Assembly (NCBI GenBank): GCA_946965045.2
Contig: OX337228.1
Coordinates: forward strand, 1,612,001 to 1,676,000
DNA from: Epithemia pelagica
Lineage: Eukaryota; Protista; Bacillariophyta
Length of the DNA: 64,000 nt
Direction of reading: 5' to 3'
Shown piece by piece: positions 16,602 through 40,996 of this stretch. The notes under the pieces were generated by a model. That model was given only the letters and a program-made list of their open reading frames with translations, was not told the DNA's origin and did not search any database. Each line of letters begins with the position of its first letter. Position 1 is the stretch's first letter. A program made the position numbers and the translations under genes.

Positions 16602-17124
16602 TGACAAAAGGTAAAGGACTCCGGTCGTTACGACACAACAATCAAAGATACAACAAAGCGTTAGACAATTCAAGGCACCAACCACGCAGCCAATTCCCCA
16701 CGGGTCAAGGAAAGGGCCAGCAACTACTAGAAGAGTAGGTAGGACACAAAGAGATGTGATGATGATGCTTTTTAGAATTGTGAGTGTTATCGTCTATGTT
16801 AGTGCTTGTTGTTGTTGTTCCCCCTTTTCCATCCATTTGTACTAGGTACGTAGAAATCTACACGCAGCATTGCTGGTTCGTGTGCATCTGACACCTAGAT
16901 CGCATTCAATTGTCCCAAGATATCGCACATGTTCATGGATGATGTCTAGCTCATGTCCAAGGCCATTGAAAGCGCCTCCTATCGTATTCCCTTTCTCTCC
17001 ATTGTCTAAACTACGATCTACATGTGCTAGGTGTTTGTATATTATGACGTCACAGCCAGATGAAACCACTAGGTATTGATCGTGACTCATCGTACGATCA
17101 GTCACGGTCATCTACCTTGTGCGA
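16602..17124 (-). repeat. 3' LTR of element A
   Basis: Direct repeat of 23797-24319 with four substitutions seen by eye. Confidence 0.97.
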
Positions 17125-22725: not shown

Positions 22726-23783
22726 GATATCAGTAAACTAGGTAGAACTAGGTGAAAAACTTGAATATCTTGAGCGGAGATAGGACGAAGTTACTACTGA
22801 AGAGCCCTCTGAATCAAATTCACCAGGTAGTAGCCTACTTGTATCCGTCTCCAAAAACTTGAAAAACTTGAAAATAAAACCAAATAAAATACTTGAAATC
22901 AAACCGATTGAAAATAAAACTCCAAGCAGAGGTACTATTCAGAACCGGGAGCAATGTCACGGGGCTCGCTGAGCGAAGCTAATTAGAATGTGACGCGCTT
23001 CCACTACAGTCTTTAGGCTAGGTTGCTACCCGAGGGTAACGAAGAACTAGCAAGATCTGACGGTGTCTGTTCTTGACTCCACACACCGGGATTGCCAATC
23101 CCTAGCCCAAACTCCACGTGTAGGAAGGAAAAGAAGCGATCAAAAGGCGGAAAAACCAAGAACAATTGCGCGCCAGGAAGGTAACGTCTGGCAGTTAAGC
23201 AATCTGTCCACAGCGCAAAGATAGAGAGCCTGATCGCTTGGCGGGCGACAGCAACAGATGCGTTGTTAGTAACGAACACGTGTGCCGGAGCACGCGAAGT
23301 AGTACCTGTTGAGTACCTTAACTTCGCCCCCTGACGGTATCCAGCCGGTCTGGCAAGGATCGCCCTCTTTTCGGCCTTGCGGCTTACTTGTACGTAAAGT
23401 ACGGGATGGGGATACGACAGTCTCGCGGGGACTGGGAGTTGGGTTGCCCGTGGGATTGGTTACCTCGGATAGTTCCCCCAACTCTGTTTTCGGACACAGA
23501 CAAGAAACGACGAAAAACAAAATTCGATGCCGACAATGAAGATTTTTTGACAACGATAAGACGACAACCAACCGACCCAACAACCAACCAAATGGATGAA
23601 TCGATCAAATATGACGAGACGGAGAGGACGGGATATGAGAATCAATCCCTCCAAACGAATTTTACCTTCGGAAGTAAGAACGAAACCCAACAAACACAAA
23701 CGACGCAAGAGATCGGTGAAAGACAACAATCAACCAAACGATTCGAAAAAGAGACGAGAACAACAATCAACAGGCGTGCTGTT

Positions 23784-23796
23784 GAGACTGTTAATC
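23784..23796 (-). other. Primer-binding site of element A, complementary to a tRNA-Asn(GUU)-like anticodon arm
   Basis: Directly abuts the 5' LTR; plus strand GAGA-CTGTTAA-TC gives a 7-nt loop with U33 and anticodon GTT, closed by A-T and G-C pairs. Confidence 0.75.
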
Positions 23797-24319
23797 TGAC
23801 AAAAGGTAAAGGACTCCGGTTGTTACGACACAACAATCAAAGATACAACAAAGCGTTAGACAATTCAAGGCACCAACCACGCAGCCAATTCCCCACGGGT
23901 CAAGGAAAGGGCCAGCAACTACTAGAAGAGTAGGTAGGACACAAAGAGATGTGATGATGATGCTTTTTAGAATTGTGAGTGTTATTGTCTATGTTAGTGC
24001 TTGTTGTTGTTCTTCCCCCTTTTCCATCCATTTGTACTAGGTACGTAGAAATCTACACGCAGCATTGCTGGTTTGTGTGCATCTGACACCTAGATCGCAT
24101 TCAATTGTCCCAAGATATCGCACATGTTCATGGATGATGTCTAGCTCATGTCCAAGGCCATTGAAAGCGCCTCCTATCGTATTCCCTTTCTCTCCATTGT
24201 CTAAACTACGATCTACATGTGCTAGGTGTTTGTATATTATGACGTCACAGCCAGATGAAACCACTAGGTATTGATCGTGACTCATCGTACGATCAGTCAC
24301 GGTCATCTACCTTGTGCGA
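23797..24319 (-). repeat. 5' LTR of element A
   Basis: Direct repeat of 16602-17124. Confidence 0.97.
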
Positions 24320-27300
24320 ACTTTCTCTTTTATACCTAACCTTATGCCTTTTATGCCTAAATGCATCAATGCATGATCCATCTTAAGCAGTACGTCAGCG
24401 AAAGAAACCTGACGTCTGGTGAATGGTGAATTAAGGTGATGACAAAAACTGACGTAATCGGCAATCAATATTAAATCAGATTGGATAAACAGCAAAGAGT
24501 GTGGATGTTAGTTTAGGTTCTTTTCTATCCTATGACTGGGAATGTTCTACTTCCCGCTCGCTAATGCGCAGGCTGGCGTGTCTTTCGGACGGACTAATCT
24601 GCTTCCACTCGCACTCGGTCGCCGATATTTTCTACATCGGGGATCAGGGCATCAATATTAAATGATCTAGTTCCGAGTTCGACGTAGAAACTAATTGTAA
24701 TATGTCCAATTTGATTGCTAACTGCTAACTCAATGAATGAGAAATTGAGGAAGGAGAGATGAGAACGGACGAATCAGATTGCGTCGAGTTCGAACATGTC
24801 CGCTTCAGAAATTTTGGCCTCTTACAAGTACGAGCTCCACCGCACGAAAGTTCTTCGCGCAGTAGCCCGTGCTTCACCAACTGATGAGACTTCCGCCCAA
24901 CGAGATTCACTACACCATACATTTTCCAAGAGTAAAATGAATTGCCCCTCATCCACGGTTGATTTTCTCGTAAGGTTACCTCGTACCGATGAAACCTCTC
25001 ACCATGATACGAGTATGCGATTACCCTTCCTGTACGACAGTAGTAAAACAACAATCATACTAGTGCAAAATGTACAAACCGCTTCCTAATGATAAGCCTA
25101 TTTTATGTTACCACCACTGCTGCTTGTGGTCGTTGTTATAGGAGATTGTTGCATTCAGCCGAGACGAGGAGTTCATTGTTGAGTTTGTCCCCGTTGTCGT
25201 GGCACCGGATTGTCTCTTTCGGCCAAACCAAGAAGTTGATTGTTGCGCTTGTTGTAGAACCGTAGAACTGAGAGAGACAGAGATGGAGAGCAGCTGGTGA
25301 TTGGTGTGTTTGTTGTCATTGTCATTATCGTGGCCCCGAAGTGTTTCACTCGGCCGAACCAACCAGTTGATTGTTATGATGGGGACATGCACTGCTACGC
25401 GAGGCCAAAACCAATTGGTTACATGTACTTGGTTGTGTCTGTGGTCATGGTTGAGGGTGTCGTATCATCATCACCATCCGATGGCTCGGTCGTTGTGGTT
25501 GTTGGTTTTGTCGTCGTGATTCTCCATCCTGTTCTGGTTGTGGCGACATCCTCGGCCGAGGAGGCTGCCAAAAAGTGAAGGGAAGTCTCCCTCCATTGTT
25601 GCACCATAACACTACCTTTCAGTTGTTTATTGTTGTGTCCTTAGGTCCAGTACAACCTCGGTGTTGTTGTTGTTGTTTCCATCTGTGGTCCTGTCTTGGT
25701 CGTTGTCGCCGCTCATCAACTTGTCGAACCAAACAGTTTGCCGCTCGCAAGGCTCTTCGACCAAGGCCACCGCAGCTCCACGGCGTCCACTCCTTCTTCT
25801 TCCTCTCGAACTCTGTTGTCGGAAGCAGCCGCACCACGGGCATCACCATCCTTGATGGCAGTAGAAGCTCCTTCAACCCAAGGTTGACACTTGTTTTGTT
25901 AGGACTAGTCAGGCTTTTGTTGCGTTAGAACCACCAACGGACGAGGCGCGCATTTGTTGTGTTCGGACCAATCGGTGACGACGAGTTGATTGATGCGAGA
26001 AGAGAGATGCTGGATTCATTATATCGATCGTCATTGTCTTCTTTCCACGGTCACTTCCTTCGCTCCGGTTGCCAAAAATGGAAGGTCTTCCAAACCTTCC
26101 TGTAGCTCCACAGATTTTCACAGATCATCCCTTCCCGTCCATTCCCTCGCGGTACACGTGAAGATCAAGCTTCCTGGATGGTCGGCAGAGTGCTAGCACC
26201 TTTCCTTGGAGGTGCACACCGGCTTGAGTGTGCCATGGTGGTGTTATGCAGTGCAAAATGACCGTAGTGCTCTTCCTACCAAGTTAGAATCACTATAGAA
26301 AAAACAGTGGAGGCCCTGAAAGCACGGGCTACCGCGTGAAGAACTTTCGTGCGGTGGAGCTCGTACCACAAAACACGAAACAGACCACTAATAATTACTA
26401 ATAAATCATACCTCTACTCTCACTACCTCTAGCTAGCTAGAGAGGATTACCTTAGTGAAGTCTAATGTCTAAGTCTAATCACAAGAACTTATCCATTACT
26501 CCTCATTACTCCTATTATAGATCTATGCCTACCCCTTTCTACCGGTAGTTAGCTGCTCCTACTAGCTAGCTAGTACTCCTCACTATGAGTAGAAACCCTA
26601 ACAACTACCTAGGTAGTAGACTCCCTACGCAATCGTTTTTCGGTGCGATCTCACTTATCAAATAAATCTCGAATCCCCTCTCACTCTCATGTTCACTGTT
26701 TTGCTGAAATTCCCTCATCTAAATCGGTAACAAGGAAATTATACGATTGTTATCAAGGTAACTGTGTAAATTCGCTGTTGATGGCACGCGCCAAAATCGT
26801 TCGAAACGGCGACGAATTCGGCTGCCAATTCGACACTTTTGTGCTTGGGGCATTTTAGGGGCCATATTTTATCACTCCCCTCAAGTTGGTTCCGCCACTG
26901 TGGAGGGATCAACTTGCCCAATCGTTGCTCAAAATGTGAGAATGTGCTCGCATGTGGTGGTTCATCCCATCAAATCCCAGCACTTTACGGACGGCTGCAT
27001 CCCATCCACTTATGCCCTGCTCATGAGGGTCCAGTGCCAAGTGCACATTCCATTCCTCGCATGAATTCACTCAGATACATGTCTGACTTTTGCCCCCACC
27101 TTGGAACAAAATAAACTCCTTGGTGGTTCACTGTCGTAGCTACATCCACCAAAATGATCCACCTCTTTCGATCACTCGTCAACTCGTGCTGTGTCGTTAT
27201 GACAATCACTCAACACCACGTCCCATTCCCCTCGAAGTGGTTCCACATGAATGTGTAGTCCACTCCGCACTTCCACCTGTGGTGGTTCACCGTCGTAGTT

Positions 27301-28641
27301 ACATCCACCATTCAACTTAAAATTTGTGTGCTCTGCTTTCATGCATAGCTCACATCGGTAAGGGAACACATTTCCCTTCAATTCGTCATTGCAAACATAG
27401 TGGTTCGCCTTCATGGCTACATCCACTACCAAAACATAAGTGGTTCACCATCATGGTTACATCCACTTGCACTTTACATGGGAGTCGCTCGGTGATCATC
27501 ACCTACTCCATCCCAGGACATGGGGACACTTGTCCCTGATCGCCCATGCATCTGGGCCAGAATATCGAGTGTTGGAGACAACACGAAGATGCACTGTCAT
27601 CTCTGTCCCAAAACCACTCTCTGGTCACATGACCATGGAAAGGCCCAAGGTTGCATACCTCATACAATTTTGCATTTGGGCATGTTTCCATATCAATACT
27701 TCATTGGGCCAAGACAGGATGCTCGGATATTTCCAAACGGTCATTTCCTCGTCTACAAAATCCAAATGTCATCATTTCATCATGAAATGAGCCAGTTTTG
27801 CACCTTCCAATCTCGAAGGACCATTTCGCAGAATGGATGAAATTGCAGAATCATCATGAAAATTGAGAAATTTGGTGATGGAGGTGTTCATTCCTCCCCT
27901 CACGCAGACAATGCTCAGGACAACAAAGTCTCATGCTTTTCTCGGTTTCCCGCCTTGGCTGCGTGTCTCCTGCACCAAAATCACCAAGGTCACAGCGGAA
28001 AATAGAGCGTAAAACATCACAAATCCTCGTCAGAACTTGATTTGTGGTGTGCCAAGTCGAAAACTCCCAAAATGTCATTATTTGGGTTTTTCATGGCTCA
28101 GACTCATCACCACTCAAAAACACACAAATGCTCGAATTCCATACTACGATCACATTTGGCGTCGCTGTGAACCTCACGGGGAATCCACCAAGGTGAAACC
28201 TGAGGTCACAACCTCCTCATCCTGACAACAATCCACCAGTGTGCTTGTTGCCAAGGTAGAAATGACATGGAGTCATTGGCATCAGTCGTTGAAACCAATT
28301 GACCACACTTGCCAATTGCGGATCGTTTTGGCCATTACCGTCATTTTACCGATGTTCATCATCAGTATCTCTCCTGACGTTCATCGTCCGAGTCAGTATT
28401 TCCACCAATTGTTTACCATCATGGTCATCTTTAGTTGAGACCTACAAACCTTCGTCGTAGCTAGTCTCGTTGTCATCATGACAGTGTTACATCAGCTTGT
28501 CAGCATTTTGAACTTGGATTTGCGTTCAGTTTGTTGGGATTCGGCTGGTCAAGACTATCCATTGGCATTCCCTTCTTGGTGCCTCACTTGCCAGCATCAA
28601 ATCAATGGCACAGTCATTGATGTCCTCGTGCCCACGTTTGT

Positions 28642-29401
28642 CATCGCAGTTATACCCACATCATGGAGCATCGTTTACTGCTGTCGTCGTATTGACTTTT
28701 ACTGCTGTCATCGCAGTTATACCCACATCATGGGGCATCGTTTACTGCTGTCGTCGCATTGACTTTTACTGCTGTCATCGCAGTTACCTTTACTGCTGTC
28801 GTTGCAGTCTTTGCATTCCTTGACTTTTACTGCTATCGTTGCAGAGCCTTGACTTTTACTGCTGTCGTCGCAGAGACTTTTACTGCTGTCGTCACATCCC
28901 ATGCTGTCTGGCTCTACTTCTCCCCTCAGACTTCACATTGCCTTGAGGATATGAGAAGTCTGATTTACTGCTGTCGTCGCAGTCTTTGCATTCCTTGACT
29001 TTTACTGCTGTCGTTGCAGAGCCTTGACTTTTACTGCTGTCGTCGCAGAGACTTTTACTGCTGTCGTCACATCCCATGCTGTCTGGCTCTACTTCTCCCC
29101 TCAGACTTCACATTGCCTTGAGGATATGAGAAGTCTGATTTACTGCTGTCGTCGCAGTCTTTGCATTCCTTGACTTTTACTGCTGTCGTTGCAGAGCCTT
29201 GACTTTTACTGCTGTCGTCGCAGAGACTTTTACTGCTGTCGTCACATCCCATGCTGTCTGGCTCTACTTCTCCCCTCAGACTTCACATTGCCTTGAGGAT
29301 ATGAGAAGTCTGATTTACTGCTGTCGTCGCATCCCATGCTGTCTGGCTCTACTTCTCCCCTCAGACTGCACATAGCCTTGAGGATATGAGAAGTCTGATT
29401 T
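28642..29401. repeat. Higher-order tandem array inside element B
   Basis: Two 67-bp units, then about three 175-bp units and a truncated one; all built from the core TTTTACTGCTGTCGTCGCA. Confidence 0.92.
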
Positions 29402-29724
29402 AGAGCCAGCAACGTGAAGACATTTTGTGCATTTGTGCATTGACGCTGCAGTGCAGTGGAGGTGCGAGTGTCATTCCGCCCACACACATTGTGGGAAGCA
29501 TTTGTCCGACGGTGTCCTCACATTGCAAACCGCATCATCCCGCCAGTGTTTGCATCGTACAAGCTGACTCAACCTCTCCCCTCAAACTGCCATCATTGCA
29601 TTGAGAAAAAGGGAGTGGTTTGGCATTGAGCCAGCACAGTGCGTCCATCCGCCATTTTTGTTTGCGTCCACTCGCCAGTACATTGGTTTGATTGTTGAAG
29701 GCAAGCCCCCAATATGATCAATCA

Positions 29725-29839
29725 GCGTCAACTCGCCAGTATCATATGCGTCAACTCGCCAGTATCATATGCGTCAACTCGCCAGTATGATTTGCGTCAA
29801 CTTGCCAGTATGATTTGCGTCAACTCGCCAGTATCATAA
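29725..29839. repeat. Tandem repeat, 5 x 23 bp, inside element B
   Basis: Unit GCGTCAACTCGCCAGTATCATAT and variants at 29725, 29748, 29771, 29794 and 29817. Confidence 0.95.
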
Positions 29840-30147
29840 ACAAGAAACAAAGGCCCAAAACAAGACAAACAATCACCCTCATGGGTCTTTAGGTTTGCTT
29901 GGTATTTGCCCAATCTTGCTCTGATCAATGTCCCAGCTGCACGCTCATGGTGTGGTTGGGCTCAGTAGCAGACTTGGATAATGTACATCCTTCGTCCATT
30001 CCTTGGTCATCGATGTTGTCGCATGGGTCATCCATCCTCATGATGGCAAGCATACCCAAACACACGACACCAATACACCAGAAAAGAACGACTTTGCCAA
30101 TTCCAATGATAATTCGGTGCTTCAGTAAGCCCCATCGTCAAGGCAAT

Positions 30148-30161
30148 TGGGTCTGATAAAC
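30148..30161 (-). other. Primer-binding site of element B (tRNA-Ile(GAU)-like anticodon arm)
   Basis: Plus strand TGGGT-CTGATAA-AC abutting the TG of the LTR at 30162; identical to 40659-40672. Confidence 0.75.
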
Positions 30162-30432
30162 TGCTGAAATTCCCTCATCTAAATCGGTAACAAGGAAATT
30201 ATACGATTGTTATCAAGGTAACTGTGTAAATTTGCTGTTGATGGCACGCGCCAAAATCGTTCGAAACGGCGACGAATTCGGCTGCCAATTTGACACTTTT
30301 GTGCTTGGGGCATTTTAGGGGCCATATTTTATCAGTTTTATAACGATTACTCTACTACCAGTATCCGTAGTGTGAACGGTGAACGGGGATCAGTCAAATT
30401 GCAGTGACCAGTGACCAGCCAGTGACCAGTGA

Positions 30433-31358
30433 GGGTTGGTCTTAACAAGCGTGAAATTTCACACATTTCACACTTTCTGCCTACGTAGCCTGACGTTGCA
30501 GTGAAATTTGATGAAATTCACAAATCTGCTCTCCAGGGCTCTTTTCACATCGAACAATATTTCACACAGAGGTTTATGGGTTCTAGGAGAGAGAAAAATT
30601 GAGATTTTTTAGCCTGCGCCAAGTTCCAACCAACAAAATCAAACAAACCCCCACCATGACAGACCCTCCTCCTGCACCTCAGGATGTTGGGCCTGAGAAG
30701 AAGCACACTTCATAAACAACAGCATAAGCTGTTGATTTCTTGACATCTACAGTTCTTCGGATGTCGTGCATTGCACCCCCTCGTAGATAACGAAGGGTCA
30801 TGTAAAGCCGTAGTTCAGTGGGTATGGCTCCACCCCGACGTGCTGCCATGTCCTCGTCCTTGTGAAGCTTCTCTTTGATCAAGATATGGAGTTTTGCGAA
30901 TGCATCCACAGGCATTCTGATGCACTTCTCGAAGTCTTTCGGATTGTTCGCCATCTGCGCAGCCACAAAAGTTTCCCGGTGGAGTAGCTTGAGGGGACAA
31001 CTTGGTGAACGACTTCTTGGTACTCTTGGTGTTTCTTGTTGTTTGATCTGCATCCATAGCTGAATCAAACCAAGAACATCAAATGCTGTCTCCTGTTCAG
31101 CAATTTCTTCTTCTTCCTCCATTGTCAAGAGATTCATCGTGCACAACAATCAATATGTGCACAACAATCAAAGTGTGGTTATTGGTTTTTGTTGTCGTAC
31201 GTGCGGATCAGATGGATGATGGTGTGGGGGAAGTGGTGGGAGGGGGTGAAAACATTTCACATCGTTTAGACCCTAGGATTTCACGTCTAAAAACTGTGAC
31301 AAACCGAAGGTGTTTTAGTGTGAAACATGTGAAATTTCACGCTTGTTAAGACCAACCC
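30433..31358 (-). mobile_element. PIF/Harbinger internal-deletion derivative, 926 bp
   Basis: 42-bp TIRs GGGTTGGTCTTAACAAGCGTGAAATTTCACA.. (two mismatches); TSD TGA (30430-30432, 31359-31361); transposase fragment inside. Confidence 0.92.
30679..31149 (-). pseudogene. N-terminal HTH fragment of a Harbinger/PIF transposase; no DDE core
   Basis: IRMPVDAFAKL..AIPTELRLYMTLRYLRGG..DI..VKKSTAYAVVYEV. Confidence 0.8.
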
Positions 31359-31952
31359 TGACCACCGAGAGCTAGGTACAGCTAGGAGCCGGGATCTGAA
31401 GTCTGAAGTCTGGATCTGGAATCTGGAGTCTGGCGTCGTGTTGTGTGCTGTGTTGTTGTGTTGGATCGGGGGAGCTTCAAGGTTCAAGATTCAAGACCGG
31501 AAAACCGGAAACAAAGAGCCAAGAGAGAAAAGAACAACTGCTGTCAACTACGTCTACGTCGCGAGTGACGGCGAACAACAACAGGGCCATTGGCCATTTC
31601 TCACTACAACTAATTTGTAGTAGCAGAAAGTGCAAGTTCATGGTTACGAGCACCATCATGACAACATATATCATATATCATGATTATATGATTATTGTGA
31701 CGATCGAAGATGTGAGGCATTTCTTGTCCTTTCTTGTACTTTCCGAAGCAAAACAGATCTCGAATCTCGACACTTGACTTTTTGAGATCGGGATGATGAG
31801 CAAAAAAATTCGCCCTTGGTTCTCCTACTCCTAGAGTGGATCGTCAAATAATGCACTTGGTCTTGACAAGATTTGGTTTATTCTCCATGTTTCTCTGTTG
31901 TTGCCAGCAGTTTCTTGACAGACAGCAACTTAAGCGCCACTGCTTGTCCCTA

Positions 31953-34124
31953 CTACCGTGATCGTGGGTCAGGGCTGGTTGTGGATTGCGTGGACGACGG
32001 AACCCCCAGGACTTTGTTAATCAAGTCGTTGGCTAACAAGTTCATGGGATCCAACCTGGCTCTTGCTTGGTTGAATTGGTGCAAGGGAAATCGTTGTTCC
32101 ATAAATAATCTCAGATTCGCCAATTGCCACACCGTTGCCGGAAGTTCCAACTTGGCCCAGTGAGATGTTGCATTGTATTTGACGCCAATGGATTTCATGA
32201 GGTTGCAGTATGGTCCCTTGAAAAGATTTGTAATCGCACGTCGTTGAACTTCGTCTTGTTCGGATACGGCCAAAGGTAGGTAGTTGATGATTCCCACCCA
32301 AGAATGAAGTCCATCGGGAGGACCATGTGCAGGAGACTGTTGGTGGTGGCATGTTGTCATCGGTGAGAAAAGAGGAGTGCAAGTATAATAAGCGTGTTGA
32401 GACCGACAACTTTCAAACATGTTCTAGAGAAACACAATGCGTCATCTTTCCAGTACTACACTTACCATGAGCGACGACGACGACGCCGTCCATCGCTGTT
32501 CAATAGGCGAATGCGCTGGAATACCGTGTTGTTCAATACCCTCCAACAATTCAGCCATGAACTTCATGTCGTTTCCATTGTTTGTTTGTTGCGTTCCAGT
32601 GGGGAAGCACATTTCGAGGACCCATTGTTGTCCTCCACAATCAAACTGCAACAATTGATCGCTTGGCTTGGTTTGATATCCCTCGCTGCGTTTCCAAAAT
32701 TCGGCTTCGGCCTGATTGCATCGCTTCACATGTTCCACATCCAACGGGTTGTAGGCCACAATGGCGTCGCGCAAATCACCAAAGCCCATTCCGGCAATGT
32801 CTTCATTGCTATTATTTGAGCTATTAGTGTCTTGTTCTCGTAGTTCCAACAGCAAGTCACGGAGTGGTTGAAAGCGGGCCTCTTCGGCGTCGGCCTTTGG
32901 TGTTTTGAGTGCCTTTTCCTTCTTCTTTTTCTTCTTGTTGGTTTTGGGCTGGCTTGTCGTTGTGTCATGGATTGATAGTTCTTGCGCTGCTGTTTGCTGT
33001 GCTGGTTTGGGATCATTGGTAACCACAACTACAGTATCGGTGTAGGGGATCCACATGTATCGGATATGCTTGTGTTGTTTCAGCAAGACGTCAATTTGAT
33101 CCATGGCTTGTTGTCGTGAGAGACAATAGGTATGTTCGACCAATTCATGAGCGGGCACACATTTCATGGTCACTTGTACCACGACCCCCAAACATCCCAA
33201 TCCCACCTTGGCCAATTCAAAGAGGGACCCGTCGGCCGGTGTCAGTGTCAGGGTTCCTTGTCCCGGTGTGACGAGGACCAGTTCCGTCACGTAATGGTCC
33301 ACGGGGGACAGGGACTGACCCGTTCCATGAGCACCGACTTGGACAAAGCCTCCCATTTGTTGTTCGGCAATACTGGCCAAATTGGGCAAGGTCAAGTGAT
33401 GTGGTCTCAAGGCCTCGACGACTTGAGCCACACGGGCACCGGCTTGGACCGTGACGGTTTGCTGTTGGGTATCCACATGGACGAGACGATCCAAATTGGC
33501 CAAACCAATAATGCCACCTGGCTCGTCCTTGTTGTCGCAAAAGGCAATTCCATTGGGACTGAGAGCCGATCCCATGGGACGAATCTTGTATCCCTGTTTG
33601 TGACAATGAGCGACAATTTCTTGGACTTGTGACACCGTTTCTGGTTCCCAATAGCGATCGTTGGAGACTTGGGTGGAATGCGTTCCACTCCAATTCAACA
33701 ACAAGGTAGTGGCAGCATCGTCGTCGTCGGTCTCGTCCGTTTGGTCCACGGAATCTGCTTGTGGTGGTGGTGGCTGTTCTTCCAATTGAGTCGTTGTCGT
33801 CGTGAGAATACTACTACTACTACTACTACTCGTAGTACTAGTAGAACCCTCCGACGGACACCACCCCGCCGATGCCGCCAGGACAACGGCAGAGGCGGCT
33901 GCCGTGGCAATGGATGCCGTTCCGCCATTCCAGAAGGACGAATGACCCTTGCGAAACTCTTGGTTCGTTGTTTCACCGCCAAGCACTTGTGCTGATCTTG
34001 CTTTGGTCAAGACAGAAGCCGTTCTGGTCATTGTTGTAATTGTCGATCGCACGATTGGCTGACGCAACCCTACATGCGGTCGTCGTCGTGAACGGGGACT
34101 CATCCAACGACAAGCGAACTGCAT
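31953..34124 (-). CDS. GLDH: L-galactono-1,4-lactone dehydrogenase; 2 exons, intron 32337-32465; start Met uncertain (34124, 34103 or 34031)
   Basis: NWSGTH, GSALSPNG, LASIAEQQMGGFVQVGAHGTG, FDCGGQQWV, APIEQRWT, SWVGIINYLP, HWAKLE; a GTAAG..CAG intron joins SSLM to SPAH in frame; Arg/Ser/Thr-rich N-terminus resembles a mitochondrial presequence. Confidence 0.93.
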
Positions 34125-34548
34125 GGTGCGTCCTCCAGTGTGCCAAGTCCTCATGCTTTTCCTTTTTCAAACAAGTACTCGAGCCAGAGAGAGAGAACGA
34201 ACCAGAGTACTCGAACTACGGAGAGAACGAACCAGAGAAGTGTATCTAGGTATTGCAAACGGCTGTGGTGCGTTTGGGCCATGGCATGACGCAAAAGATC
34301 CACAGAAAGATATACGCGATCGATTTTGATAAACGCGACCTTTCTGCGTCTTGTGAAAGTACGCACGAGTCGCACGCACCACGTATAGCCCTACAAATGT
34401 CCGAACCAACGTCCTCGAAACGAACGGAAATTTTTAAATTAGCTAACTAGGATCTTGCGATTGCCTGTGTACTCGTCTCGTAACGTTGCTTGCAAAGATG
34501 CTGAACCCGAGAAGAGTGAGCTCTTCTCACGCTCCGACGACTCTGCAT

Positions 34549-34737
34549 CGAAAGAAATCGCTCATAACATGGCGGTGTACTCACTAGCTTAGGGGTAACT
34601 CAGGATTTCATGCAAAAGAGTGACCATACCGGCCAAGGACTAAGGGATAAGCATTATCGCTAGATTCAAGGTATATCGCCAGTGCGCGTCGGCCTCGCTG
34701 GGCGGAACGCCTGCCATCTCGTGACAGGAATCTTTCG
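34549..34737 (-). repeat. 3' LTR of element C
   Basis: Direct repeat of 40673-40861; terminal inverted hexamer CGAAAG/CTTTCG. Confidence 0.95.
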
Positions 34738-34786
34738 GTCCCCTCGAAGATGTGATGCCTAGGCCTCATAGATTCGATGTCGTAAA

Positions 34787-37700
34787 TCAATAGCTGAACC
34801 GATTCAACAGATGATCACGTCGCTTCTCTGGCAGAGGTTTGGTGAAAAGATCAGATAGGTTGGTCAGCGTCCCCTCCTTGGCTACTCGCATGGTTTTAGC
34901 AGCCACGGCCTCTCGGGCCCTGTGGTAACAGATGGACGTGTGCTTTTTCTTCAACGTTGACTCAGGTATTGTCGTGTTTTTGAAGACAGACTCGTTGTCA
35001 CAAAACACGTTCGTTGGTCCTTCTATCGGGATTCCGAACATTCGGAGTTTATAGCGCAGTGCTTCAATATGTTCCACGGCCGTTCTCATCGCGATAAACT
35101 CGCTTCCGAAGGTACTCGTCTCGACGGTATTCTGCCGTTTGCTGTACCAGACGATTGGAGCCCGATTGACAAACAACAATAAACCTGTCTGCGACCGCCG
35201 AGTGACCTTGTTTGATGCGTGATCGGCATCTACAAAACAATGGGTAGATACTGGGTGGCCACGTGGTTCAGGCATGTCCCCAGGAATGGATTCCTTGGCA
35301 TCTCTGTAAAAGTCGTACCAATCATATTGGCTAAAGCACCGCTCATCGATATCTGGGTGCATCGGGTCAAACCACAAGCGTCTCTTTGGGAACGCTTTCA
35401 GATACCCAAACATTGCATATGCTTGCTGCAGATGGCCTTCTCGTGGCATCGCGAGATATGTTGACATCATTGACGTCTCCAATAGGACATCAACTCGTCC
35501 TAGTTCCACTGCCCACCGAAGGATCCCGATAAGTTCTTGGAACTTCTGAATCCCGTCTGCTTTAAGCTCCGGGCTGGTGTCGTTTTCAGGCCTATAGCCG
35601 TATGAGAGTGGTGTCCGGCAACCAGTAGGGAGACGCTGTCCCTATTCAGCAAGTTGCTTTTCAATGTTTTCAATAGCGGCACGAACGTACTTCTCAGATG
35701 AGATGTACCACGCCTCTCTGCCGTCCATCGACATCGTCCCGAGTTCTGCCCCGAGATACATCTCGGGCGGCTCAATCTTGTCGTCTTTTAGTTTGAAGAC
35801 CGCCTGAACGCCCTTTAAAACCTTCTTTGAATCGTGTGACAACGCCAATAGGTCGTCAACGTAACATAGGACGTATTCATAGTACTTGAAACCGTCTGGT
35901 TTCACAGCTGGTCTCATCCAAAAATCAGGGTCGGCCTTTGACGGTTTGAACCCAATGTCGTACAATGTTTCGGCCAAATGCGCACGGAACGCGGCCCCAC
36001 TGGACTTGAGCCCGTACAAGGCCTTCTTGATAATCATAATCGTCCCCTCTTCCGATCCCAGCTCTGGTCCAGCCCTGAACCAAATCTTCTCACGGCAATC
36101 TGCCGTTAGGTAGGCGTTCTGGATGTCACAAGCCGATATATTTAGGTCATTCAATGCGGCAATGAGGAGGGCAATCCTAACCGAATCACGGGAAACCACG
36201 GAAGAGTATGTCAGGGATGCCGGGGTCTCGGTGAGGTGTCCCCCGGCGACAAACCTTGCCTTGCGACGGAAATTCTCCCCCATCTTGACGTCGAAGACAA
36301 TATGACATCGTATTTGCTGGTAACCAATGGGGATTTCCGACTCAGACTTCTCCCACGCTTGGAAGCCAGGGCGCACATTACGCATTTCCTTGCAGATTGC
36401 ATCCCACCAGAGTGTGTTACCATTTTTTCTATCGAGTTCCTTTGCCTCCTCAACGGATTTGGGGATTTGTATGCCGAACTTGTGCGTTCGGAGCCAGTAT
36501 TTGGACTTGAGTTTGGAAATAATTCGGTTGCGTTTCTTCAACACCTTTGGAACCCACCAGGCAAATGCCGGTTCCATGGAGATGCGAGCGGCGACGGCAT
36601 ATTCGGAGACTTGTACTGGGTACGACTCCTTCAGGTCTTTGAGCGTGATCCAATTTGTGGATCCGTCCTTCCACTGGACTAGAAGCTCCCAACCGATGGT
36701 CGTTTCCCTGCGTCGCTTGTTTCCATTTCGCATCGTGACGAAAGCATCTTGTTGTGTCACGGCTTTACTGTTTTTCCTGTGGTCAATGATTTCGTCCAAG
36801 AGGACTTGTCGGTTCCCGTCGTCGTCGACCTGGGAGAAAAGGTTCTCTGCGATGTAATTTGCAGCGAGAGCGGTCTTGGTACCGTCTCTAAATTCAACCT
36901 CGTACATACGTGTGTCGAGGATGGGGTTGTCGTGTGCCGTTCCAATTGGGAGGCCGTCCTTGTCACGCAACCGTTTTGTTACTTTGGCTAACATCGGGAA
37001 GTCCTCATCCTGTTTAGGTAAGGCAACTTCCATGTTAACATAAGTGTCGTCAAAAACTTCCGGGGTAAATTCGTCGTCTGCCTCCTTGACCTCATCATTG
37101 CTGACCACATCGTAGAATTCAGCGTGAAAATCAGGGTCGTGTTCGAGGGGCGGGAGGTCCCAATCAGTAGGATGGGTTTTGCCTCCGTCGACGAGGAAGT
37201 GTGCAGAATCGTGAAGCTTGTCACGGATAAAGGTGTCGAATTCTGTGCAACGATGTTGAACACCGGTTTCTTGCAATTCCAGATTGGTCACCCTGGTGAC
37301 GGTTGTACGGGAGACAACGCGTCCAGTGTCAGTCAGAATCCAATAGGACATAAGGCTTCCCACTCGGTGAGAGACACCAAGCCATCGTCCGAGACGAGTG
37401 GCACCCAAACCGGCGTTGTCGTTATACCAACACCAATCGTAAAAAGTAAAATCCAAATATTCGGATATGTCTGGCGTTTCGCCTGTCACTCGTTCTAGAC
37501 TTGTGCGACCGTCGAGGTCGCCAGATTGCCGCGCAGTCCGCTGCATCGTTTCGCATACCCAGCGTATGCCATAGTCCCATAGGCGACGTGGAACACGTTG
37601 TTTGTGCATGACGCGGAACCACCGTTTGCGAATCTCGCGGATTACGCCTTCCACTTTGGACTGGTTGTGACGATAGGGTTCAGTCACTTGGAGATCAATC

Positions 37701-38953
37701 GCATGCTTTCGGACTTGCTCGCGGAAAGTCGTGCGTTTCCCAGTTTGTTCTTTTGAGCCGTCACACAAGAGTGTATCCGGGACTCCAAAATCAGAAATGA
37801 ACTGTTGGAGTCCTGCACCAGCATCACTTTTCTTTTCCATCGGGTATGCTGCGGCGAAAAAATCTTTGTTCGCAAATATTTGAGCGTGGCAGTTACCATC
37901 TAGAGATTTATACTGCCCGTCCATGGTATCGGTAAAAACGACGTCTTTCAGTCGGGGCCGTTCAAACATGCGGTCTGCCCGATAACGTCGTGACAAAGGC
38001 AAGATGGCAGAGCGGACCATTCGTTGGGTTGTCGCGGCCAACGTTTTCTTGGCCTGTTCCAAACCAATGAACCATCGTTCACTGAGAGACTGAGCGGTCA
38101 CTGTACCGCGTCGCTCGTTGGAAATAAAGGTGCGCTCAGATGGGATATCCAAGCGAGGGAGGAATTCGGGTTTAACTTCATGGTCTGCAATCTGCACACT
38201 GGCAATCAAACGAGAAGTCAGTTGGTTCGGTTCATAAATCGTCCCCTGAAAGATGGGCTCAGACGATACAACGGAAATACCGACCGTATCTGCAGGTTGG
38301 TTCCGCGGGAATATGTCCTGATGCGGTTCCCAGTCGTGGTGGGAAGATAGATGGATGTAAGGCAACTGCTCCAGCTCCGGCTGTGATGGCACCCGAGTAT
38401 CGAAATAAATGATGGTGCCCTGAGTGTGGAACGGGATGACCACGTCTTCGTGGTAAATACCCATTGGGTCTTTGGAATATGGGTTGTCCATGACATCGAT
38501 GCCATTTGCCCTCACTTGATTGGGGTTGACCAGGGAATGCTTCATCTGGTCCCCCATCCACAATGCTTCATTGAAAATGAGAATAAATTCTTGCCCGTCG
38601 GACTGTCGTGTCCATAAGGTGGCTCCGGTGACGACAGGTACGTGCTTAATGGCATCGTATGCTTCAGTGTATGGGGACACGTCGCATTCTTTTCCCGTAT
38701 ATGCCAAGACGGTACAATTTGCGCCAAGAACGATAGTATCGGCATGGGTGTCAAGCTCGACGCGCCCTGTCTCACCGACGACGTTGGTTCTCTTGATGCA
38801 CGATTTGGAAGAGGACACTGTGCTGCGTGCACTTGATATCAATCTGCATATTGATCGTTGTCTCCCTACTTGCATATAATTCCTCTTAAGCAATCGTTCA
38901 CAGAGTAAACTCACGATTTTAGAATAGAGGATAACAAATAGGGAGGGTAACCA
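34787..38953 (-). pseudogene. pol (PR-IN-RT-RH) of element C with one in-frame TAG at 35642-35644
   Basis: Frame is open from the gag stop to 35645, then continues in frame (QLAE*GQRLP..ELGRVD) to 34787. Confidence 0.9.
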
Positions 38954-40441
38954 TCAGCTGTTCTTAGCTCTGGCTCTCTCATTTCGCCCGCCGAATTTGT
39001 TTCCGGCATCATCAGGCACTGGATCTTCTTGATCCTTGTTCGTTGCATCACTGGCTACAGGGATCAAATTCGTAGTGATCTCTGCGACTTGCCGTTTGAC
39101 CTCAGAGAGGAGAGTATCAGCAATGGAGGATACCTCCGATGCTTTGCGTTTGTTTCCAGATTTCTGCTTTTTCTTGCGTTCATCGATGACCTTTTGTTTG
39201 TCGTCGTCGGGGAGATCCTTCCAATTCTTGTAGAATCCCGTGAAGATCGAGCCATCAGGCATGGTAACGCCGCTCTTTGGTGCCTTTGCACCACGTTGGG
39301 GAGTGTTGAACTTGTTGTTGTTGTTTCCTCCGCCACGAATACGTTGGGCCGCGGATACCTTGCGTGCCAGTTGATACTCCGGCATTTCGCTCACAGCTGC
39401 AGCAATATGATTGGCCGCCTGTGTGTATGTCAGTCCGTCCATGTCGAACCGGACTTTGAGTGCTTTGACGGTGTCTTGTAGCTGTGGGTGCTGGACCCTT
39501 TTAAACAGCTCTCGAATTTTCGCCGCGTCCGTATACGCTTCCCCCTCGTCTGCATAGATGTTGAACATCTTTTGCAGACGATCCAGGAACGTGGTGAAGG
39601 GAAGAGAGCGTTCCGATTTGTAATGAAGACTTTCGCGCATGCGATCGGCCGTTGCAATACGGCGACTGGCATTACCTTCTCCAGCGTAGTGATTGCGAAG
39701 AGCTTCCATGTCACGTCGACCATCGGCATAGCGAGTCAAATGCTTGATCCATTGTTCAGCAGTTTCTGAGACTAGGAAATTCTTGAGAAGTTGATGGACT
39801 TTTCGTGCGTCGGTGCGAAAATGCGTGCCTTGTAGAGGGGCACAAGCAACCATTGTTGCATTGAAGTCGTCTCCAAAAGTGCCGTTGTGGTCGGGCTGTT
39901 CATTCTCACGGACAACGTAAGACAGCGGAACGCCATTAACACCCGGTATGGTGCTTAGATAGTTGACAAACGCGGGCTCCCAATCGGGCCACTTCCGTTC
40001 GTCCTTGAATTTTCCCGGATCGGCAGCCTTGCTAACCGTATCCGCCTGGTCGGCTTCGACCTTGCGAGTCTCGGAGCGTTCGATTGATTTCGTTAGAACC
40101 TCCTTGAACTCATCTTCATCGTTGAGATTGGTAATGTCAGGTCGTGCGGAGCAACGAAAGAAGTCCTGAACCCAATGCATGATGCCAAGCATCCATTTGA
40201 TACGGCGCATGCCGAAAATGATGCGTCCATTAGCGTCGGTGCGCTTCTCAAAGCTTTCAGCCATATTGCGAATATCTGTTTCGGTAACCCCAGCGAAGTC
40301 GCTCAGGGATTGAAAACCACCTTCGTTCCGAATACGAGTCTGGTGTTGGGCATCTGTAAAACCAATCCAAGTGAGAGCCTGGTTCAGGTCTGCCAATTCT
40401 TGTGCCGCCGCTGGTGCGGCTGCCGCTGCTGCTGCTGCCAT
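38954..40441 (-). CDS. gag: gag of element C
   Basis: 495-aa ORF just downstream of the PBS; GVNGVPLSYVVRE motif; basic C-terminus. Confidence 0.85.
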   Translation of the reverse strand: MAAAAAAAAPAAAQELADLNQALTWIGFTDAQHQTRIRNEGGFQSLSDFAGVTETDIRNMAESFEKRTDANGRIIFGMRRIKWMLGIMHWVQDFFRCSARPDITNLNDEDEFKEVLTKSIERSETRKVEADQADTVSKAADPGKFKDERKWPDWEPAFVNYLSTIPGVNGVPLSYVVRENEQPDHNGTFGDDFNATMVACAPLQGTHFRTDARKVHQLLKNFLVSETAEQWIKHLTRYADGRRDMEALRNHYAGEGNASRRIATADRMRESLHYKSERSLPFTTFLDRLQKMFNIYADEGEAYTDAAKIRELFKRVQHPQLQDTVKALKVRFDMDGLTYTQAANHIAAAVSEMPEYQLARKVSAAQRIRGGGNNNNKFNTPQRGAKAPKSGVTMPDGSIFTGFYKNWKDLPDDDKQKVIDERKKKQKSGNKRKASEVSSIADTLLSEVKRQVAEITTNLIPVASDATNKDQEDPVPDDAGNKFGGRNERARAKNS

Positions 40442-40658
40442 GTTTCAGTATATATCTGTCTGACTGTTGGTAAGGTAAAAGCAATTGTATAACAATTAGT
40501 ATCAGTCGTCGCGAGACAACAACATGCAGAGGTGATCAATCTCCGCTGATGATGCCAGGGTGAGCAAACGCTCAAGTCCCTCCTTACACAATCTCGACAT
40601 GCGTCCCGCACGCACGTATGGTCCGAGATTGCGGCGCTCAGTTGCATCCTGTTCGCAG

Positions 40659-40672
40659 TGGGTCTGATAAAC
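40659..40672 (-). other. Primer-binding site of element C (tRNA-Ile(GAU)-like anticodon arm)
   Basis: TGGGTCTGATAAAC abutting the LTR; identical 14-mer in element B. Confidence 0.75.
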
Positions 40673-40861
40673 CGAAAGAAATCGCTCATAACATGGCGGT
40701 GTACTCACTAGCTTAGGGGTAACTCAGGATTTCATGCAAAAGAGTGACCATACCGGCCAAGGACTAAGGGATAAGCATTATCGCTAGATTCAAGGTATAT
40801 CGCCAGTGCGCGTCGGCCTCGCTGGGCGGAACGCCTGCCATCTCGTGACAGGAATCTTTCG
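40673..40861 (-). repeat. 5' LTR of element C
   Basis: Direct repeat of 34549-34737. Confidence 0.95.
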
Positions 40862-40996
40862 GCATCAAGAGTCATCCAAATCGTAGAACCGAGGGGAACG
40901 AAATAGGCGACGAGGAGGCGGATCAGTCGCACCTCTGATGTCGGTCGCAGGAGTCTGGCCAGCATCGGCCACGTCACTCCACATCAGTACAGACAA

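Follow-up and report, generated by a model that had tools for sequence, protein, structure and literature searches.

Half-tRNA priming, in which a fragment of a transfer RNA (tRNA) starts reverse transcription, is known from a class of Ty1/copia retrotransposons that comprises copia, Ty5, Osser and the Bianca type. Drosophila copia and yeast Ty5 are primed by a 5′ fragment of the initiator methionine tRNA (tRNA-iMet) that ends in the 3′ strand of the anticodon stem, which has been shown experimentally according to one published account (PMC5371799, citing Ke et al., 1999). The plant Ty1/copia lineage Bianca carries sites complementary to an edited half-tRNA-Ile, with A34 converted to inosine (I), in 92% of 260 elements (Neumann et al., 2019; PMC6317226). 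Primer sites matching internal tRNA regions have also been described for Tca2-type elements of Candida albicans, which use tRNA-Arg(UCU) (PMC4139406), and for fungal FunCo1, which uses tRNA-Lys (PMC5445492). For diatoms, the main paper on retrotransposons contains no primer-site or tRNA analysis (PMC2806351), and no description of a diatom primer site was found in our literature searches. Here we analysed a stretch of 64,000 nucleotides from the diatom Epithemia pelagica (contig OX337228.1, positions 1,612,001 to 1,676,000; hereafter the window), which contains the long terminal repeat (LTR) elements A, B and C, and compared their primer sites with those of the systems above.

A 14-mer shared by elements B and C is very probably the minus-strand primer-binding site of a broad diatom Ty1/copia lineage and of the non-autonomous elements that depend on it. 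On the plus strand of the window, TGGGTCTGATAAAC occurs in two exact copies, at 30148–30161 (primer-binding site of B, minus strand) and at 40659–40672 (primer-binding site of C, minus strand), and no further copy was found in the window with up to two mismatches allowed. Both copies directly adjoin the right-hand LTR of their element with no spacer, and because all long open reading frames (ORFs) of C lie on the minus strand, this right-hand LTR is the 5′ LTR. The sense strand of the elements reads GTTTATCAGACCCA at the site, and the plus-strand letters represent the tRNA-sense sequence, corresponding in C to tRNA-Ile positions 27–40 with G at position 34. The trinucleotide TGG, complementary to the CCA 3′ end of tRNAs, is absent at both sites. 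B and C have only this site and a short polypurine core, GAGGGGA, in common; blastn at a word size of 7 detected no other nucleotide similarity between them. On these points our results agree with a preliminary description made from the letters of the window, which had reported two unrelated elements with an identical site against their 5′ LTRs and no TGG.

The genome assembly searched comprises 60.5 Mb in 23 contigs, including the 40-kb mitochondrial contig 22, and its plastid sequence is represented by contig 23 together with plastid-type pieces on contigs 14 and 15. In keeping with a diatom host, 17 matches to silicon transporters were found in it. It contains 251 copies of the 14-mer and none of the reversed control, which excludes chance at the genome level. 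We sampled 70 of the 251 sites for inspection of their flanks. The LTR ends at these sites group into approximately 30 unrelated clusters, and similarity among the flanks ends precisely at both edges of the 14-mer. The base that follows the 14-mer is T at 49 sites and C at 21, and TG, the usual LTR terminus, follows at 42 of the 70. Gag proteins of most coding families with the Ile-type site are only 22–28% identical to the Gag of C, a weaker stand-in for a tree of reverse transcriptase (RT), which suggests that the association with the site is old and broad.

Similar sites are present in other diatoms. Five relatives of the C pol, taken from Fragilaria crotonensis (GCA_022925895.1), two ENA assemblies and one JGI metagenome, are 63–70% identical to C in the RT region. 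The site lies directly after the 5′ LTR, with no spacer and no TGG, in all five, and it is identical to the 14-mer in four; the fifth, relative L163, carries the variant GCTTATCAGACCCA with a single change at position 39.

The 14-mer was compared with the tRNAs of the host. When position 34 was left free in a search of the whole genome for the anticodon arm, three sites were recovered, one of them an element copy and the other two carrying GGGTCTAATAAACCC. Both GGGTCTAATAAACCC loci were identified as nuclear tRNA-Ile(AAT) genes by ARAGORN, with an Rfam tRNA score of 65.7 bits, and their anticodon arm reads TGGGT-CTAATAA-ACCCA. Over positions 27–40 the 14-mer agrees with this nuclear tRNA-Ile(AAU) in 13 of 14 bases, the sole difference falling at wobble position 34, where the gene has A and the site has G, and in all 14 if I34 is read as G. 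The site thus runs from the 5′ strand of the anticodon stem through the entire loop to the second base of the 3′ strand. These two genes are the only host genes that match the 14-mer in at least 13 positions, and the next-best tRNA among the 51 distinct tRNAs collected from the genome reaches 11 of 14. ARAGORN found no tRNA gene in the window itself.

The isoleucine anticodon arm, with stem and loop as the preliminary description had assigned them, is therefore present in the host, and the search for a tRNA-Ile with matching positions 27–40 succeeded for a nuclear gene with anticodon AAU and failed for the anticodon GAU that had been proposed. The arm TGGGTCTGATAAACCCA, the G34 form predicted for tRNA-Ile(GAU), has no match in the assembly, and no G34 arm continuing into CCCA occurs anywhere in it. 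Plastid tRNA-Ile(GAU), with the arm CACCC-CTGATAA-GGGTG, matches the 14-mer in only 7 of 14 positions, and mitochondrial tRNA-Ile(GAU), with the arm TCCGT-CTGATAA-ACGGA, in 12 of 14. The mitochondrial version of the 14-mer is located only in the mitochondrial gene and in one nuclear copy, and never beside an LTR. Whether the primer source was nuclear or organellar had been left as a question; since the arm belongs to the two nuclear tRNA-Ile(AAU) genes, the source would be nuclear and not organellar.

The G at position 34 of the site appears to reflect editing of the tRNA. In the cytosolic tRNA-Ile(AAU) of eukaryotes, ADAT2/ADAT3 deaminates A34 and so generates inosine, which pairs best with C and is read as G by reverse transcriptases. 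The site G34 can thus be understood as an inosine footprint. Across the genome, position 34 is G in 251 cases, A in three and never C or T, and the three A34 sites are the two tRNA genes and one decayed copy from a family that otherwise has G. The site would pair fully with tRNA-Ile(AAU) only if A34 is inosine, given G in all 251 copies against A in the tRNA genes. An ADAT2/Tad2-like deaminase gene was identified on contig 3 of the host, and among solved structures it matches best (E about 1.6e-19) the ADAT2 proteins of mouse and human, yeast TAD2 and one chain of a trypanosome deaminase. Two other deaminase matches were set aside: a TadA-like match on contig 4, which resembles bacterial TadA more closely and is probably organellar, and a match on contig 10, which is a dCMP deaminase.

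Element A provides an internal control. Its LTRs lie at 16602–16901 and 23797–24096, its long ORFs are on the minus strand, and its pol contains an RVT_2 domain (PF07727; E 2e-26), which identifies it as a copia element, one whose RT region shares only 34% identity with that of C. The primer-binding site of A (23783–23796, minus strand) has the tRNA-sense sequence TGAGACTGTTAATC, which matches positions 27–40 of nuclear tRNA-Asn(GUU) in 14 of 14 bases; the matching gene was reached through an Rfam scan and lies on contig 1 at 1271783–1271855. Four GAGACTGTTAATCTC matches considered as candidate tRNA-Asn genes proved to be other element copies. The 13-nt core of the Asn site, GAGACTGTTAATC, has 293 copies in the genome, is preceded by T to give the full 14-mer in 43 of 44 sampled sites, and is distributed over approximately 10 LTR clusters in this sample. 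Use of two tRNAs over the same positions 27–40 makes it very unlikely that the half-tRNA geometry is a coincidence, and supports the earlier suggestion that the copia/Ty5 geometry applies here. No report of half-tRNA-Asn priming was found in the literature, and tRNA-Asn as a half-tRNA primer may be undescribed so far.

Taken together, we consider it highly likely, judging from sequence complementarity, that the site of B and C pairs with positions 27–40 of the cytosolic, nuclear-encoded tRNA-Ile(AAU) in the manner of half-tRNA priming. The diatom elements share the features of the half-tRNA-primed Ty1/copia class, namely a copia-type RT, a non-CCA site at the 5′ LTR and complementarity to an anticodon arm. 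As in copia and Ty5, the site adjoins the 5′ LTR, lacks TGG and pairs with the anticodon stem-loop, and copia's own site also spans positions 27–40; the diatom primer would likewise be a fragment. Unlike copia and Ty5, the tRNA is Ile or Asn and not iMet, and in the Ile type a modified wobble base would lie inside the duplex. The Tca2-type elements and FunCo1 are likewise copia elements whose site pairs with an internal stretch of a tRNA other than tRNA-Met, but they use other tRNAs in other hosts and involve no edited base. The closest likeness in the tRNA itself is to Bianca, which also belongs to the copia superfamily and uses the anticodon-arm half of cytosolic tRNA-Ile(AAU), with an edited wobble base put forward to account for the pairing and a primer type characteristic of the lineage. 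In contrast to Bianca, the host is a diatom and not a land plant, the target-site duplications of the diatom lineage are 4 bp long and not 5 bp as reported for Bianca (PMC6317226), and the C family has CG...CG LTR ends. Given the precedents of Bianca, the Tca2-type elements and FunCo1, half-tRNA priming by non-Met tRNAs and by edited tRNA-Ile was already known, so the novelty that the preliminary description had seen in a non-Met primer does not hold. The diatom case reveals no new priming principle and adds to the known half-tRNA-Ile type.

Other sources of the primer were weighed. The site literally reads GAU, and our tRNA survey was a sample, so the primer might instead be half of a nuclear tRNA-Ile(GAU) isodecoder that shares the arm but escaped assembly or was overlooked; this is very improbable, however, in view of the zero count of the full G34 arm in the assembly and the presence of the same arm with A34 in two genes, and the single GGGTCTGATAAACCC match that was recovered is not a tRNA. 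Cytosolic isoleucine decoding in eukaryotes relies on IAU and UAU, which also counts against such an isodecoder. We give hardly any credence to the 5′ half of mitochondrial tRNA-Ile(GAU), despite the fit of its arm at 12 positions, G34 and A39-C40 included, because the two mismatches are adjacent and lie in the stem, its own 14-mer is never found beside an LTR and all 251 copies fit the nuclear stem. Copia-type particles, moreover, assemble in the cytoplasm.

Two further possibilities concern the nature of the pairing itself. With priming deduced from sequence, there is a slim chance that the 14-mer is a conserved cis element for packaging, dimerisation or self-priming whose likeness to a tRNA is coincidental. 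Against this stand the two different 14-mers that occupy the same place and match positions 27–40 of two host tRNAs, a placement that is exactly that of a primer-binding site, and leaders in which nothing complementary to the site or to other parts of the tRNA was found. A different proposal accepts the tRNA-Ile but not its editing: the gene has A34, editing in the diatom is itself presumed, and an unedited tRNA-Ile(A34) or its precursor could prime with a tolerated A:C mismatch opposite position 34. Copying of such a primer would nevertheless reset the sense strand to T, whereas C is fixed in 251 copies, in approximately 30 families and in five elements of other assemblies, U and A variants being absent, and we regard this proposal as exceedingly improbable.

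Some points weigh against priming by an edited half of nuclear tRNA-Ile(AAU). The inosine at position 34, cleavage after position 40 and the point at which strong-stop DNA begins are all inferred. The flanks inspected represent 70 of the 251 sites, and the host tRNA set was likewise sampled, with 63 of 1840 Rfam candidates scored, although the whole-genome pattern searches do cover the specific arm. In addition, N6-threonylcarbamoyladenosine at position 37 (t6A37), which is presumably present in the primer tRNA-Ile, would fall inside the primer duplex.

For priming by the nuclear tRNA-Ile(AAU), the following mechanism can be proposed. ADAT2/3 would convert A34 of the tRNA to inosine, as it does in other eukaryotes, and the tRNA would be cut after position 40 to yield a 41-nt 5′ fragment, by analogy with copia and Ty5. 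By the same analogy, this fragment may anneal to the element RNA through its last 14 nt, so that its 3′ OH primes extension by RT into U5, and position 34 would form an I:C pair with the element RNA. In every cycle, synthesis of plus-strand strong-stop DNA on the primer would restore the C of this pair through the reading of inosine as G. Primer copying might halt at G26, which is probably N2,N2-dimethylguanosine (m2,2G), and such a halt would account for the sharp end of complementarity at position 27, although this is speculative; a similar limit is set on retroviral primer sites by 1-methyladenosine at position 58 (m1A58). A search of the B and C leaders detected no complementarity of 7 nt or more to tRNA-Ile positions 1–26 and no complement to the primer site itself. 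Element B would be mobilised in trans, with proteins supplied by an autonomous element that shares the same primer.

The base equivalent to position 26 was also recorded. It is T at 37 of 70 Ile-type sites and at 27 of 44 Asn-type sites, and both tRNAs have G26. Counted per LTR cluster, T accounts for approximately 55%, compared with 26.5% T in the window, with clusters that are not independent. This excess might, speculatively, reflect pairing of m2,2G26 or misincorporation opposite it.

A more general rule for diatom copia elements can be suggested tentatively, and we think it less likely than otherwise. Any cytosolic tRNA might prime as a 5′ fragment cut after position 40, with a 14-nt site bounded by this cut and by an RT-blocking m2,2G26, and lineages might have switched tRNA (Ile-IAU, Asn-GUU and perhaps more) while keeping the geometry. 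If true, this rule would imply a structure-specific nuclease that makes defined 1–40 tRNA fragments, and primer sites would constitute a DNA record of tRNA modification, with I34 written as G and a T excess at the position-26 equivalent.

For element C, a raw repeat search gave an LTR pair at 34549–34738 and 40673–40862, and the boundary was settled by comparison with L162, a relative from Fragilaria whose LTR has CG...CG ends and whose 4-bp duplication, CTGG, is unambiguous. The 5′ LTR of C (40673–40861, minus strand) is 189 bp long with CG...CG termini and is 100% identical to the 3′ LTR (34549–34737, minus strand), and the element is flanked by a 4-bp target-site duplication, GCAT, at 40862–40865 and 34545–34548. 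The CG...CG ends, which differ from TG...CA, and the 4-bp duplications are both kept in relatives from other diatom assemblies (L162, L163). A polypurine tract (34738–34749, minus strand; sense CTTCGAGGGGAC) directly precedes the 3′ LTR, and the core GAGGGGA is common to C, B and the relatives L162, L163 and L166. The gag-pol of C (34787–40441, minus strand) forms one reading frame that ends with TGA at 34787–34789, and its RT is of the Ty1/copia type (Pfam RVT_2, PF07727; E 1.2e-18). Two in-frame stops interrupt this frame despite the identical LTRs, a TGA at 38954–38956 between gag and pol and a TAG at 35642–35644 in pol just past the RT domain; solely for local comparison, in-frame stops were entered as X.

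Element B was delimited by a raw repeat pair at 26702–26874 and 30162–30334. Its 5′ LTR (30162–30333, minus strand) is 172 bp long with TG...CA ends and pairs with the 3′ LTR at 26702–26873 (minus strand), and a 4-bp target-site duplication, GTTT, is present at 26698–26701 and 30334–30337. The internal region (26874–30147, minus strand) is non-coding, and searches for gag or pol similarity in it, tblastn included, gave no meaningful match. Its 3′ end holds the polypurine tract (26874–26884, minus strand; CTTGAGGGGAG). Because B lacks genes while keeping both a primer site and a polypurine tract, its copying must depend on proteins that act in trans. Much of the element is filled by a 175-bp tandem repeat at 28789–29402, with approximately 3.5 copies, and a shorter repeat of about 23–30 bp at 29727–29838. 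Fragmentary contigs from sequencing runs, compared with B, show other copies of its family; one of these, on a contig of run X4, has 464 bp less of the repeat and a different flank, and its primer site is unchanged.

Unusual arrangements of tRNA genes were observed elsewhere in the assembly. Contig 21 (12.9 kb) carries 33 cytosolic-type tRNA genes, approximately one per 250–300 bp, including tRNA-Ile(AAU) and tRNA-Asn(GUU) genes whose anticodon stems differ from those of the chromosomal genes, and no element site matches the Ile arm of this contig. This contig might represent an array of nuclear tRNA genes, or else DNA of foreign origin. A stretch of the nuclear contig 13, at about 404–419 kb, contains mitochondrial-type tRNA genes identical to those of contig 22, which arose either by insertion of mitochondrial DNA into the nuclear genome or by a join made during assembly.

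The occurrence of the same priming strategy in plant Bianca elements raises the question of shared ancestry versus convergence among copia lineages. Pipelines for annotation in which only the 3′ ends of tRNAs are tested would probably score elements such as B and C as lacking a primer site. The sites described here provide a mechanistic annotation for very abundant diatom retrotransposons, with at least 251 Ile-type and 293 Asn-type sites in one 60-Mb genome, and the fixed G34 would represent DNA-level evidence for inosine editing of tRNA-Ile(AAU) in diatoms.

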